NCBI GenBank assembly: GCA_965112735.1 | Contig: OZ218962.1 | Location: forward strand, 2,418,001 to 2,482,000 | DNA: 64,000 bases | Source: Phaeosaccion multiseriatum | Lineage: Eukaryota > Protista > Ochrophyta, other classes | Direction: 5' to 3' | Shown: positions 32,532 to 44,500 of the stretch, in pieces | How positions within the stretch are numbered: position 1 is the first letter of the stretch | How the letters are laid out: the number at the start of each line of letters is the position of its first letter | Made by a program: the position numbers and the translations under genes | The notes under the pieces: generated by a model | The model's input: the letters and a program-made list of their open reading frames with translations, nothing else | What the model was told of the DNA's origin: nothing | Databases searched by the model: none

Positions 32532-35500
32532 ATGACGTCGATCGTACCACCACCCCTGGTGATAGGAGACCAGGGGGCAGCAGCCACCGCCCCACAGTCT
32601 CCTGGGGGCCGCCCTCGCGTGGGTTCGCGTCTACGCGCGAGCCCAACGTACCAGGCCGTCATGCGAGACCTCACCAGCGAGGCGGACATGGCGGCAGCAG
32701 CAGTGGCCGACAGCGGGAGGAGAAGCTCCGTCCGAGGGGATGCCGCGCCTTTGGGGGCGACGGAGGGTCGAGGTCCGGTGATTCCGCTAAGTCAGCCACA
32801 GCAGAGTCTCGTCCAGGCCAGACGGCGGTCTTCAAACAGCATGCGCAGGAGCAGTCTGACCAACTCCCCGCCGTATGGAGCCCTCCCTGGTTCGGGCCGA
32901 CGAGGGAGCAGCTATTCCGTTGTTGTTGGTGGTGGTGGTGGTGGTGGTGGTGGTGGTGGTGGTGGTATTCGTGACGAGAAGAGTCCTTACGCTTCCTCCT
33001 CGCTATCGGGCTCTCGGCGAGGAAGCGGTGGCGATGTGCGGCGTCCGTCCTACTCCCCTGACAGCAGGAGCACCAACAATGTGAGCCCATTGCAGAGAAA
33101 CCGGAGCAGAATAGAGTCCACCCTCACTACTGCCGCTCCGGGAAATGACAATGGTGCCTTGCGCCGCACTTTTGATCAGGGTCAGGCCCAGGGACAGGGT
33201 CAGAGTGGTGGAGTCAATTCCAGCCAGGAGAGAGGATGGGCGGATGGAGGAGGAGGAGGAGGAGGAGGAGGAGGAGGAGAAGGAGGGGAAGGAGGAGCAG
33301 GAGACGCCACCTCTCCCTCTTTGGGTGGCGCAATGGCCGTACTGAGAGCCTCAAGGAAGCTCCGTGCCAACCTCGTCAGAGACACAAGCTTGCGGATAAG
33401 CAAGTACGTAAGCTTTCGTGTGTGTGTGTTGTCATGGGGGTGGCTCTGTGATAAGGGGAATGTTCTTCCTACAGGAAGGTATCTGGAGGAGAGAGAATGA
33501 AGTGGTAGGGAAGGGGATTGTCGTCAAGTCCACGTCCATTGGCTTCGTCTGTTTGCCCCACTCACTCAATCACTCACTCACTCACTCACTCACTCACTCA
33601 CTCACTCACCCGCTCATCCACTCCCCCATTCGGGCACTCGCATACTTACATCACTCATTCACTCACTCACTCACTCACTCACTCACTCACTCACTCACTC
33701 ACTCACTCACTCACTCACTCACTCACTGACTCACTCACGCACACACTCACTCCACTCACCCATCTACCCGCTCCACCCGCGACCCGCTCCATATCCGCAA
33801 GCAGAAGTCCCCCCTCCACGCCTCGGCGTTCTCTTGATAAAAGTCGCCGAGGAAGCACGCCGTCTCCGGGCACCAACAACACTGTCGTGCGCAGCGTGTT
33901 CGGCGAGGACAACCTTCAGGTACGTGACGTCATCTGCTTTCGTATGATTACGTAGAGTTTACGTAGGGCAAGGGCGGCTTTGGGAAAGTGCCTGCCCGAT
34001 CAAGAAAGAAGGCCTGTGAACGCTCCACAACGGACCATCGCAGCCACGGCCCAACAGAGAAGAAGGAAGTGGCAGCCCCGAACACCATTCTGCCCCTGCT
34101 ACCTAGAGCCCCCCTGCTTGTATCACCAACTGCCGCGCCTGACGCCGGTACCCTTCTTCTGTCATACGGACGGAAGCCATTGCTGACACGACGACTGCTG
34201 CTGCTGTATCACCAAATGCTGCCACTGTACCCCCAACCGTTGCTGCTGCTGCTGCTGCTGCTGCTGCTGCTGCTGCTGCTGATGATGATGATGATGATGA
34301 TGATGATGATGATGATGATGATGATGATGATGATGATGATGATGATGATGATGATGATGATGATGATGATGATGATGATGATGATGATGATGATGATGAT
34401 GATGTATCACGAACTGCTACCCCAGGCCCTCTTGAACGAGTTTATGGACTCAACGACGGTGACCCAGCTCATGTCCGTGTGCCACAGAGTGGAAGCTGTG
34501 CTGCAGGAGACACACGGACAGAGAGAGGCAAGGCTCGAGCGGCTTGTGGATGGGGACATTGCTCGCTTTAAGCTTATGAAGAGGGGCATGCAGCAGAGCT
34601 ATCTGGAGGTAAGAGAGAGAGAGTGCGGCTGTGTGTGCATGTGCGTGCGTGTGTGTGCGCGTGCGTGTGTGTATATATATATATATATATGCGTGTGTGA
34701 GTGTGTGTCCATGTGTCTGTGTGTGTCTGTGTACGCGTGTGTGTGTATGTAAGCTAACAGAAAGCGGAGCACTCCTTACAACAAGAGCCCATTACTCGAC
34801 CAACAGAGTTCATCCCAAAACCCTACCCCCTCTACCCCACCCAACCCTCTCTCTCACACCTACACACACACCACATCACCACCCAGGAGAGCCACGTCAA
34901 CAATACCATGGGCACAACCGCAAGCTCATCCTACGACTACATGATGCGGGTGGCGGACAGCAAGCAGAAGGAACTGGACAGGGGCATAGCTGAGCTCGAG
35001 CGCTATGAGAGAGTGTTGGAGAAGCACTGCTTGGACAGCAGGCTGGCGCTCAAGAGGAGGCACAATGTGGAGAGCAAGAGACTGCATCGCTTCGTGGTGA
35101 GCGACGCAGGGGGGAAAGGGGGCGAGGGAGGGAGAGAGGGAGGGAGGGAGGGAGGGAGGGAGGGAGGGAGGGAGGGAGGGAGGGAGGGAGGGAGGGAGGG
35201 AGGGAGGGAGGGAGGGAGGGAGGGAGGGAGGGAGGGAGGGAGGGAGGGAGGGAGGGAGGGAGGGAGGGAGGGAGGGAGGGAGGGAGGGAGGGAGGGAGGG
35301 AGGGAGGGAGGGAGGGAGGGAGGGAGGGAGGGACCAAAAGTCTACGGCTTCACGACAGCCCGTTCGCTACAAAGACATATGCTGGTGCTTGCGTGCGGTG
35401 CATCAATGAGTTGTTCATGTCTTCTTCTCTTCGTCTTCTCCTTGTCCTTCTCCTTCTTCTTTGCACGTTCGAAGGAAAGGACTCGAGATGAAAGCCTGAT

Positions 35501-41500: not shown

Positions 41501-44500
41501 TCAGGGGAAGGGTCAGGATCAGTGTCAGGACCCTGGGGACCAGACGCGGCCTCCTTCGCCTGTCCCTTCGCCTGTGTCTCCGCCTACGCACTTCATGTCG
41601 CACGCGAGCAGCAGCAGTGGCCCTCCGGGGTTGAGCGACCCCCAATCCGCAGCAGCAGTTGGTGACACAGCAGCAGCAGCAGCAGCAGCAGCAGCAACAG
41701 CAGCAGCAGCAGCAGCAGCAGCAGCAACAGCAGGAGGAGGAGGAGGACGTGGTCATGGGATAGGTGGAGGACGAGCAGCAGCAGCAGCAGCAGCAGGAGG
41801 AGGAGGAGGAGGAGGAGGAGGAGGAGGAGCTAGAGGGGGAGGTGGAGGAGGAGAAGGTCCAGTAAGCAGGCCAATCTCTCCGGCATCTCACTACAGTTAC
41901 ACGCCATGCGGGAGCCCCACGCACGCACACACACACGAAGTGATGAAGGCCCCAACCTACTCGAGTTTGCGTAGCCCGAGGGGGCAGGCACCGCGCACCC
42001 CCCGGGGCGACGCTCCGCCCGGGGGAGGCATGAGTCTCGGGGGGGGGCTAAGTGCGTCAGCCCAGAGGCTGGACAGGGAAAGCGCTGTCGGAGTGGACCC
42101 CGGAAAGATCGTTTGGCACAGCACCGCAAGGATGATACAGGTACGTACGTGAAAACACGCGCCCGCGTGTTTGTGTGAATGTGTGTATGTGTGTGCATGT
42201 GTGTGTATGTGCGCGTGTGCGTGTGCGTGAGTGTGTAGATGTATGCTGCCTGGTCGGAACGCCAGTTCTCTCTCCTCTCCTCTTCCCTCTCACTGTCTCC
42301 CTTCTTTTGCAGCCTATTCCCCTTCACGCACACACGCATACATACACACACATACACACACGCACAAACAGCACACACGCAAATACAGCACACACGCACA
42401 CACCTTCTCTCTCTCTCTTCCTCGTCTAGACGGTGGCTGTGTCCCTTTCCCTCACCCTCACCCCACGTCCTCTTCCCCTCCTCCGCCTCCCTCTGCGGAA
42501 AGATCATCGTGGTACTCAACTTCATCTCCTGCGCCATATACCTCCAATGGCGTTTCACCCGCTCCCTCGTTAACATGGTGAGATTAGTAGTTTCAGTGTC
42601 AGTTGCTAGCAGTTTCAGTGTCAGTTGCAGCGTACTGTTCCACAGCTTCGGTTCTTTCCTGCCCCTTCTTCAATCTGTCCCCCTCTCTCCCCGCCCTCCG
42701 TCCCTCTCTCCCTCCCTCCTTCCCTCCCTCCCTCCCTCCCTCCCTCCCTCCCTCCCTCCCTCCCTCCCTCCCTCCCTCCCTCCCTCCCTCCCTCTCTCCC
42801 TCTCTCCCTCTCTCCCTCCCTCCCCCCTCCAGACGTATAAATGGTACTCCTTCATCTTCCTCGTGGGTGAGATGATCCTCGTCTTCGGAGTGGCCACCAG
42901 TCATGCCACTCGCATCATGCCGTCGAACAGGTCGGGACCGGGCTCGGAGCACGTTAAAAGTCACCTCCTCCACCTAACCTAGGCCGGGGCTCAGAGGATT
43001 TTAAAACCCACCTCCCCCTTCCTCTCCCCCTCCCTCCCCCTCCCTCCGACCCTCCCCCCCTCCCCCCCTCCCCGCCCCCCTCCCTCCCCTCAGGCCCTAC
43101 ATCACCATGGATGACCTCATCGAGACTTCCGAGGACAATCGCGGCGGCGTCAGTCCCCGGGGGGGTAGAGGCTTGTCCCCCCGGGGGTCTGCCTTCTCCC
43201 CCCGAGGATCCGCTACCCCAACCTCCACATACAAGGCTGCCACAGCGACCTCCGTCATGAACGCCGCTCTGCTCGCCAAACAGGTCAGTATGACAGGAAG
43301 TCAGTGCGTGAGTGAGTGAGTGAGTGAGTGAGTGAGTGAGTGAGTGAGTGAGTGAGTGAGTGAGTGAGTGAGTGAGTGAGTGAGTGAGTGAGTGAGTGAG
43401 TGAGTGAGTGAGTGATGAGTGAGTGAGTGAGTGAGTGAGTGAGTGAGTGAGTGAGTGAGTGAGTGAGTGAGTGAGTGAGTGAGTGAGTGAGTGAGTGAGT
43501 GAGTGAGTGAGTGAGTGAGTGAGTGAGTGAGTGAGTGAGTGAGTGAGTGAGTGAGTGAGTGAGTAAGTAAGTGTGTGAGTGAGTGAGTGAGTGAGTGAGT
43601 GCGTGAGTGAGTGAGTGGGTGGGTGGGTAAGTGAGTGAGGGAATGAGTGAGTGCGTAATTGAGTGAGTGAGTGAGTGAGTGAGTGAGGGAGTGAGTGAGG
43701 GAGTGAGGGAGTGCGTGCGTGAGTGAGTGAGTGAGTGAGTGAGTATGTAAGTGAGTGAGTGAGTGAGTGAGTGAGTGAGTGAGTGAGTGAGTGAATGAGT
43801 GAGGGAGTGAGGTGAGTGAGTGAGTGAGTGAGTGAGTGAATGAGTGAGATCGAGGGCCAGAGCCGAGGGAGAGGAGAAACGCATCCATAGTCCTTCTGCC
43901 ATTTGCCCTCTCCATCTCTTTCTCTATCCCCTCCTCCTTTTTGTCTCTCTCTCCCTCTCCTTCTTGGCTCTTTCTTGAGGCTAACAGAGGTTGAATCCCC
44001 CCCTTGACTCGCGATCCCATCCCTCCCCTTCAATGACTTAGGCGACGGTGGCTGTCCTTCTCCCCACGGCCGGCGAGAAGCTCATCACTGTCCTGCTGGC
44101 GTTGCTGGGATGTTTCAGTCAGGAAATGTGGGCGATGTCTCAAGTGCCCGTAAAGGAACAGCTGAAAGTGTTGGTGCTCGACGAGAAGCGCAGGAGCGAG
44201 GTGAGTGAGGGAGTGAGGAAGCAAGGGAGGGAGTGAGTAAGAGAGTGACTGAGCGAGGGAGGGAATGAGCAAGCATCGTATAGCCTAAGTGTAACCAATG
44301 TCTACCCGGGTCATACCAGCTCGTCCATCCTTCCTCTCTTCCTTCGCGCACGTATGACGCATGCACGCACACACACAAAAAGGGCTGTGCCCACATCATG
44401 CAGGCAGTGCTCTGGGCTTGCCTGCGCTAACTGTTCGAATCCTCTCCCTCCCCTCCATCCCGTCCCTCCCCTCCCTCCCCTCCCTCCTTCCCTCCCTCCC

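Follow-up and report, generated by a model that had tools for sequence, protein, structure and literature searches.

In CesA and BcsA two transmembrane (TM) helices precede the glycosyltransferase (GT) domain, and in plant CESA the N-terminus comprises ~250 residues with a RING-type zinc finger. The fungal class V/VII chitin synthases carry an N-terminal myosin motor domain, a module that ties the enzyme to cytoplasmic machinery. In brown algae, GT2 proteins have been treated as CESA/CSL proteins or as possible mannuronan synthases (PMC11468063). Here we describe a GT2 synthase locus in a 64,000-nucleotide (nt) stretch of the genome of the ochrophyte alga Phaeosaccion multiseriatum (contig OZ218962.1 of assembly GCA_965112735.1; hereafter the window), at which the synthase is probably preceded by a giant N-terminal arm. 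The window corresponds to G000:C13:2,418,001-2,482,000, + strand, in a genome of 67 Mb and 22 contigs, and the positions given below follow window numbering unless another contig is named. The literature we searched contains no description of such giant N-termini on GT2 synthases, which agrees with the original prediction, made from the letters of this stretch, that the architecture is undescribed.

Vaucheria litorea P0003 (MMETSP0945), Tribonema KAG5175559.1 (P0070), Phaeothamnion CAM9576110.1 and the metagenomic proteins P0005 and P0024 belong to the same GT2 clade as the window enzyme, are about 50-54% identical to its exons, share its catalytic motifs and the juxtamembrane spacing DP(Q/S)-27-WR, and likewise have a disordered N-terminus. 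However, these proteins total only 850-1,045 residues, their N-termini span 180-330 residues, and none has the block encoded by exons 3-5 of the window gene or its MLESGFEY motif. Two motifs of the Vaucheria-type N-terminus, HKRxSxWxSxxW and GRVDxFxKA, are absent from the window arm. Among solved structures, those closest to the family are plant CesA, CslF6 and BcsA. Plant CESA/CslF6 (PDB 8vi0, 6wlb, 8dqk; E 5e-14 to 2e-8) share with it PF03552 and an alignable juxtamembrane region, and have two TM helices ahead of the GT domain, as is predicted for the window enzyme, but the plant DCDH is N-D-A-R-H in the window enzyme, and the window arm is about ten times longer than the plant N-terminus and gave no zinc-finger match. 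The fungal chitin synthases resemble the window enzyme as processive GT2 polysaccharide synthases fused to a large cytosolic N-terminal module; in their case this module is a folded motor of known function, whereas the window arm is mostly disordered and has no recognized domain.

Our best explanation of the locus, to which we assign a probability of roughly 0.7, is a single ~22-exon GT2 synthase gene whose cytosolic N-terminus, enlarged to about 2,584 residues, is organized as a three-layered arm; the whole unit, 32532-50327 on the + strand, would probably amount to ~3,300 codons. The first layer, exons 1-2, would be a leader rich in Ser, Arg and Gly that carries basic-kinase-type sites. The second would be a conserved and probably helical block (exons 3-5 together with the first 13 residues of exon 6) that also occurs in stand-alone proteins encoded on C9 of the same genome, and the third a 2,090-residue single-exon stretch, mostly disordered with long helices between, that has the juxtamembrane motif at its end. 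Most of the arm length may have arisen by triplet-repeat slippage and by insertion of a 15-nt mini-element, the length being tolerated and selection acting solely against frameshifts and stops. The conserved block, helices and phosphosites might in turn serve the synthase as a regulated flexible tether or as a handle for self-association.

The window region is eukaryotic, with ~58-62% G+C, short exons and introns full of microsatellites. We rebuilt the exon model from the sequence and checked the frame and length of the joined exons by script; homology searches and folds were done exon by exon. As had been predicted (at ~2,580 residues), six exons lead in phase and without a stop into the first TM helix (TM1): all arm introns are GT-AG, with donors of type GTACGT, GTAAGA, GTGAGC or GTACTG and acceptors after pyrimidine tracts, and 2,584 codons stand ahead of the TM1 exon. 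The predicted 6.27-kb exon and the junctions on either side of it (35702/35871 and 42140/42503) were recovered in the rebuilt model, the exon accounting for 6,270 nt, or 2,090 codons, of a 2,093-codon open frame at 35871-42152. The features of the arm and its junction with the membrane region are:

32532-33403, + strand: exon 1, rich in Ser, Gly and Arg, 290 codons plus 2 nt, containing the first ATG of its open frame; donor AA/GTACGT
33805-33919, + strand: exon 2, Ser/Pro/Arg-rich with one RRGS site; acceptor CAG/, donor CAG/GTACGT, phase suited to exons 1 and 3
34426-34608, + strand: exon 3, opening the conserved, helical-looking block; G+C of 0.74 at third codon positions (GC3) and 0.34 at second positions (GC2)
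34887-35096, + strand: exon 4, second part of the conserved block; GC3 0.83
35601-35702, + strand: exon 5, matching the exon-5-like piece on C9 and positions 5448-5498 of the metagenome contig L012
35871-42140, + strand: exon 6, low-complexity arm with helical islands, characterized by open reading frame (ORF) statistics, repeat periods, AlphaFold2 (AF2) and entropy
35871-35909, + strand: conserved start motif of exon 6, with counterparts MIEDGVEYMTPVQ in L012 and MIELSLEYASPVD on C9
39723-39809, + strand: helical island in exon 6 (residues 1285-1313), with a blastp match to the big ORF on C9 and an AF2 helix of predicted local distance difference test score (pLDDT) ~70-75
42096-42140, + strand: last part of exon 6, with the juxtamembrane motif DPGK...ARMIQ and the beginning of TM1; spacing family-wide
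42503-42577, + strand: exon 7, the remainder of TM1, lacking an ATG ahead of the helix; a hidden Markov model (HMM) of the family matches its frame

Two splice junctions tie the arm exons to one another and to the membrane region. A juxtamembrane motif is found family-wide, consisting of (P)DP(Q/G/S) and, after exactly 27 residues, WR at the end of TM1. In the window VDPGK...ARMIQ closes exon 6 and IIVV...YLQWR opens exon 7, and both the 27-residue spacing to WR and a conserved Asn are restored solely by the 42140/42503 splice, which has the donor CAG/GTACGT and an acceptor AG at 42501-42502 behind a pyrimidine tract. At the other end of exon 6, the conserved F of exon 5 is separated from the opening Met of exon 6 by 8 residues in the window gene, in the C9 gene and in L012, spliced as predicted, and the 35702/35871 join is therefore supported by equal spacing in three genes. 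The juxtamembrane spacing and the collinear arrangement in L012 bear out the earlier claim that the extension is joined to the GT2 enzyme, and support extension and synthase as a single predicted reading unit. Hydrophobic stretches in the sequence mark the putative TM1 (42132-42550) and TM2 (42839-42910), the C-terminal exons are hydrophobic as well, and the TM1 region of the family aligns to plant CesA TM1. With two putative TM helices ahead of the GT domain, as in CesA and BcsA with their known topology, the arm would be cytosolic.

The closest relative of the gene is on L012, a 42-kb metagenome contig of 54% G+C whose GT2 exons are 60-73% identical to those of the window. Upstream of the GT2 part, on the same strand and in the same order, L012 carries HDVERKRLERF (end of exon 4), RQQVLAKAAGYFFGEP (exon 5) and MIEDGVEYMTPVQ (start of exon 6), and these are followed by DPGKVELHPTATGIQ (end of exon 6), an intron at the same position after ...IQ, and TM1. 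The local-alignment z scores are 5.7 for the end of exon 4 (73% identity over 11 residues against L012 5288-5320), 2.9 for exon 5, 6.1 for the start of exon 6 (0 of 2000 shuffles as good as the match to MIEDGVEYMTPVQ), 8.4 for the end of exon 6 and 4.4 for TM1. Only ~70 nt lie between the exon-5-like and MIEDG pieces of L012, and there is therefore no room for a gene boundary there. No significant match in L012 was obtained for exons 1-3 or for the first half of exon 4. MIEDG and DPGK lie 2,239 nt apart in this contig and stops interrupt every frame between them; the interval could encode at most 746 codons, versus 2,090 in the window. The idea that GT2 orthologs share the exon 3-5 block holds for L012, as regards the end of exon 4 and exon 5, and fails for homologs of the Vaucheria, Tribonema and Phaeothamnion type.

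The conserved block also occurs without a synthase. On the minus strand of C9 (G000:C9) pieces resembling exons 3, 4 and 5 (z 17.3, 17.6 and 10.5, respectively) follow one another and lead, as in the window arm, into a long low-complexity exon; this exon of ~1,120 codons opens with MIELSLEYASPVD (z 7.5) and holds a AKLWVAQAHLLDV helix that matches exon 6 residues 1285-1313. Exon 3 is 35% identical to its C9 counterpart (E 1e-6), exon 4 is 55-56% identical to two C9 loci (E about 1e-6), and the exon 6 island is 38% identical to the big C9 ORF over 29 residues (E 0.006; blastp with SEG and composition correction). The window arm thus shows the traits of an arm family: the exon 3-5 block, the start motif M[LI]E..[FLV]EY.[ST]P, a long low-complexity exon and collinearity with C9. 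The C9 genes differ in that a stop follows ~1,120 codons of the big exon, with no TM helix, and with no GT2 signal by the family HMM within 14 kb downstream. Taken together, these comparisons indicate that exons 3-6 are a predicted conserved coding unit, free on C9 and fused to GT2 in the window gene and L012.

Two copies of the C9 arm gene lie inverted and ~35 kb apart, with 94% identical DNA: L019 (3,350,357-3,355,500, minus strand), whose frame is intact over ~1,120 codons, and L021 (3,320,276-3,324,655, plus strand), whose big exon is split over at least four frames and which may be a pseudogene. The pair is a natural control that shows how fast such sequence loses its frame. A visible fusion seam was also sought by aligning the end of exon 6 with the end of the C9 ORF; the z score of 0.9 is not significant and the candidate was dropped. 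When the C9 block was looked up in the ESM Atlas, the matches were to generic coiled-coil families with scores below 0.9, which we treat as a lead only.

A second member of the synthase family in the same genome, the C15 paralog (G000:C15, about 1,770,200-1,784,300), has arm and TM1 within a single 1,199-codon exon, and long arms joined directly to a synthase therefore occur in the family. This paralog belongs to the same ochrophyte clade, its GT2 exons are 44-70% identical to those of the window gene with the same LDEK, NDARH, IEDTHT and QxxRW motifs, and it too has a cytosolic arm of more than 2,000 residues ahead of TM1. In contrast to the window arm, which is mostly low-complexity sequence in one exon, the C15 arm forms a charged coiled coil rich in E, K and A and is encoded by many exons; the two arms do not align, tblastn between them yielding low-complexity noise only. 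A weak motif match (z 4.6) between exon 3 and the end of exon 1 of the C15 paralog is noted as a lead only. In L014, a 43% G+C relative of the C15 paralog (metagenome 3300081568, contig Ga0654607_0000503), an upstream ORF of at least 971 residues at 3-2918, ended by the contig end, has a long A/E/Q coiled coil; by L014, the predicted C15-type arm is conserved in another alga. The same ORF contains three repeats of a small 'DGSYDV..SDG' unit that is Tudor- or SH3-like in appearance.

No stop occurs in the frame of exon 6, whereas the remaining + frames contain 52 and 60; 300 runs of a first-order Markov simulation gave a mean of 47 and a minimum of 25. Of the Tandem Repeats Finder rows in exon 6, 30 of 31 have periods divisible by 3 (3, 6, 9, 12 or 21), as against periods chiefly of 2, 4, 5, 8 and 10 in the flanking introns; frameshifting repeat types have therefore been excluded from a repeat-prone 6.27 kb. 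A perfect (TGC)13.7(TGA)41.7 array does, however, occupy 34241-34404 in the predicted intron 2 (its other frames read poly-Leu/poly-Met or poly-Ala/poly-Asp), and a triplet period alone is therefore no proof of coding. Exons 3, 4 and 5 resemble ordinary coding sequence, with GC3 of 0.74, 0.83 and 0.68 and GC2 of 0.34-0.41. Exon 1 has 0 stops in frame versus 10 and 4 in the other frames, and has triplet repeats only; it contains six R[RK]x[ST] sites (seven over exons 1-2) and is weakly similar to the N-terminus of the C15 paralog (z 2.9).

Several observations weigh against one long gene. Exons 1-2 appear to be the weakest part of the model, and exon 1 the least supported, with no homolog of either found by local alignment in L012 or the C9 paralogs. 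At 0.47-0.72, GC3 in exons 1, 2 and 6 is similar to the G+C of introns (0.57) and lower than in the GT2 exons (0.77). Protein word-index searches with the whole of exon 6, its last 110 residues and its first 110 residues returned no same-species protein, which is not evidence of absence, and neither a transcript-derived fragment nor an arm homolog. The intact C9 arm gene ends in a stop, and arm-only genes do exist; the other full-length family members, which include complete Vaucheria and Tribonema transcripts and two intronless genes of a compact metagenomic genome, have only 180-330 residues before TM1; and a short isoform could begin at either of two in-frame ATGs, at 41943 and 42030. The last three points would suit a locus with two products, namely a C9-like arm-only protein and a synthase with a short N-terminus that starts internally near 41943 or 42030, on a transcript beginning inside exon 6. 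We consider this arrangement unlikely: from arm to juxtamembrane motif there is one uninterrupted frame with no stop, the order of arm and then GT2 is also that of L012, and the candidate Met codons, 51 and 22 codons upstream of DPGK, would leave 22-51 residues ahead of DPGK, far fewer than in any homolog. A short isoform could also coexist with the long one.

The intron-like GC3 of exon 6 would also fit a 6.27-kb frame that is only partly exonic, with cryptic in-frame introns removing large low-complexity parts and a much shorter arm as the result. The presence of triplet repeats in intron 2 points the same way, as does L012, in which the matching stretch is broken by stops in all frames and hence contains introns. 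Such introns seem very improbable when set against the chance that an unselected stretch remains open at the observed stop density, which is ~0.02 for 500 nt and about e^-47 for 6 kb, against the frame-keeping of 30/31 repeat arrays, and against the C9 duplicate, which at 94% identity is already in at least four frames. With exon 6 read instead as one continuous coding exon of the synthase gene, we infer from the GC3 of exons 1, 2 and 6 a young, slippage-generated coding sequence that is selected only against frameshifts and stops.

Composition and structure prediction give a consistent picture of this stretch. Exon 6 has 74% disorder-promoting and 12.6% hydrophobic residues, and ~67% of it falls in low-entropy windows. 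The tracts listed in the original prediction are all present in the translation: poly-Q, poly-A, poly-G and poly-E tracts with runs including G24, Q14, S12 and D10, (GQ)n(AQ)n at 37683-37766, RS/Ser-rich stretches at ~39000-39340, and His tracts at 38871 and 41175. Single-sequence AF2 of exon 6 residues 1-1200 and 891-2090 gave mean pLDDT values of 44 and 43; ~69% of residues are below 50, consistent with the view that the extension is mostly disordered, and ~33% lie in long isolated helices, of which the best are 351-475, 1251-1323 and 1728-1817 (pLDDT 65-84). Neither strands nor a globular fold appeared in the AF2 models of exon 6. The exon 3-5 block is probably helical, judging from composition alone. 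No Pfam domain, RING-type zinc finger and PH included, was found in exon 1, the exon 3-5 frames or exon 6; matches of the arm to Plexin_cytopl (13.6 bits) and DUF3810 (17.7 bits) were rejected as sub-threshold noise.

The dispersed 15-nt genome element CAGTTGGTGATACAG occurs in 15 copies in the window versus 0 expected. Eight copies with at most one mismatch lie in exon 6, at 36006, 36448, 37098, 38331, 38584(-), 38916, 39883(-) and 41656, and leave the frame unbroken; those on the + strand translate as (Q)LVIQ. Intron 2 has two more, at 34118(-) and 34204(-). Since L012 has room for at most 746 codons and the other N-termini span 180-330 residues, the giant length is lineage-specific, and most of it looks like a recent low-complexity repeat expansion confined to this lineage. 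The same length comparisons, together with the low-entropy fraction of exon 6 and a GC3 near that of introns, do not support the dedicated giant scaffold of the original prediction in the form in which it was proposed. The roles suggested there, by which the arm might cluster synthases, tether them to the cytoskeleton or form condensates, are hypothetical.

A broader version of the scaffold idea, which we regard as quite unlikely, is that the window and C15 synthases each gained an unrelated giant arm, and that these arms, perhaps with the C9 proteins by way of the shared block, form a scaffold lining synthases into linear terminal complexes. If that were true, the arm scaffold could be phase-separating or cytoskeleton-bound, and wall synthesis would be patterned in a manner unlike the plant rosette. 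The arm makes up 78% of the residues of the synthase and would offer a concrete handle on the linear terminal complexes of stramenopile algae and on the product of the D(C/A)R clade to which the enzyme belongs, as well as a route to synthase partners; its conserved block is also present in free-standing proteins. The locus moreover shows clearly how triplet repeats and a 15-nt mini-element can inflate a coding exon with the frame kept, and the inflation of exon 6 bears on the birth of disordered regions. If most of the arm is dispensable, gene-model length in this genome would be a poor guide to function.

From 42503 to 50327 the homology-guided model of the synthase part comprises 16 exons and 734 codons. 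It was built from tblastn searches (Vaucheria P0003, P0005), comparison with the C15 paralog and a splice model, and its exon boundaries at 44042-44232 and 45026-45275 are uncertain. Beyond exon 7 its features are:

42833-50327, + strand: catalytic and membrane module of the GT2 enzyme, ~709 codons in 15 more exons, with the TGA stop at 50325-50327; homology-guided
48102-48118, + strand: micro-exon of 17 nt, aaag/GTGGCACATCGGGGCAG/gtgag, completing QIFRWHIGA (QxxRW); phases suited to both neighbors

HMMER, run against 1.84 billion representative proteins with the QxxRW exon of the C15 paralog as query, returned only 66 relatives, and those with names are all ochrophyte algae (Vaucheria, Tribonema, Heterococcus, Phaeothamnion, Heterosigma and Choristocarpus). 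An HMM of nine full-length members matches 12 window exons in order, with E values down to 2e-23. PF03552 scores 79, 79 and 66 bits on the orthologs P0003, P0022 and P0070 (cut-off 24.7) and, in the search of the alga's own genome, also matches the C15 paralog; a Pfam scan of single GT2 exons of the window gave no match, the exons being too short to score. The window enzyme is about 50-60% identical to clade members and has all of the clade motifs: LDEK, KAGNMN, (N/D)D(C/A)RH, IEDTHT, KQxxRWHxG and the juxtamembrane DP(Q/G/S)-27-WR. By these matches it is predicted to be a membrane-bound processive GT2 glycan synthase of a small CesA-like clade restricted to ochrophyte algae.

The first conserved Asp, which serves in binding of uridine diphosphate, is found in VLVLDEKRR (exon 44042-44232), and LDEK is invariant in the family. 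The DxD motif itself is missing: the window has VNDARH at 45990-46010, the HMMER alignment sets NDCRH over the plant VDCDH, and the second Asp of DxD is Arg in every member of the D(C/A)R clade. The Arg is, on this alignment, a clade trait and not a defect of the window gene. Since the second Asp is Arg, the enzyme is filed as cellulose-synthase-like and not as a cellulose synthase. The TED motif is represented by IEDTHT, in which E and D are retained and T is changed to I. QIFRW depends for its RW on the 17-nt micro-exon (...KQIF/RWHIGA/VQLL...), which a gene caller would probably miss, reporting a broken catalytic motif.

The DNA of the locus is very repeat-rich and long chance ORFs occur nearby, for instance one of 473 codons at 30288-31709 without a family match, so that the locus could be imagined to be decaying or misassembled and the long frame to be an accident of repeat-rich sequence. 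We give this very little credence: all GT2 motifs and the 17-nt micro-exon are intact, the frame statistics of exon 6 are far beyond those of the neighboring chance ORFs, and conserved islands are common to L012 and C9.

A metagenome scan with the GT2 exon alignment found no more than four contigs, which are short and all represent a different member of the family. Contigs L017 (Ga0105054_10045072), L015, L016 and L018 of Antarctic-type metagenomes hold another family member, whose juxtamembrane AKNPQDAKYH... is close to P0075; the introns of L015-L018 carry the same (CCCT)n/(GGGA)n microsatellites as the window genome, which points to a related environmental lineage. In the alga's own genome, G000:C12:1,289,394-1,289,552 (+) gives a weak match to the PTAGE...LDEK exon (34%, E 0.13, one internal TGA) and may be a third family member, divergent or broken. 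Upstream of the synthase gene, between the neighboring gene and exon 1, nothing recognizable was found; that neighbor, at 27339-29315 on the minus strand, encodes a 658-residue ZIP zinc transporter (PF02535, 86 bits) with a long His/Glu/Asp-rich repeat loop (HDSHEEGE...). Finally, one of the GT2 introns contains, at 46344-46546, a 107-bp unit duplicated exactly in tandem (1.9 copies, 100% identity).

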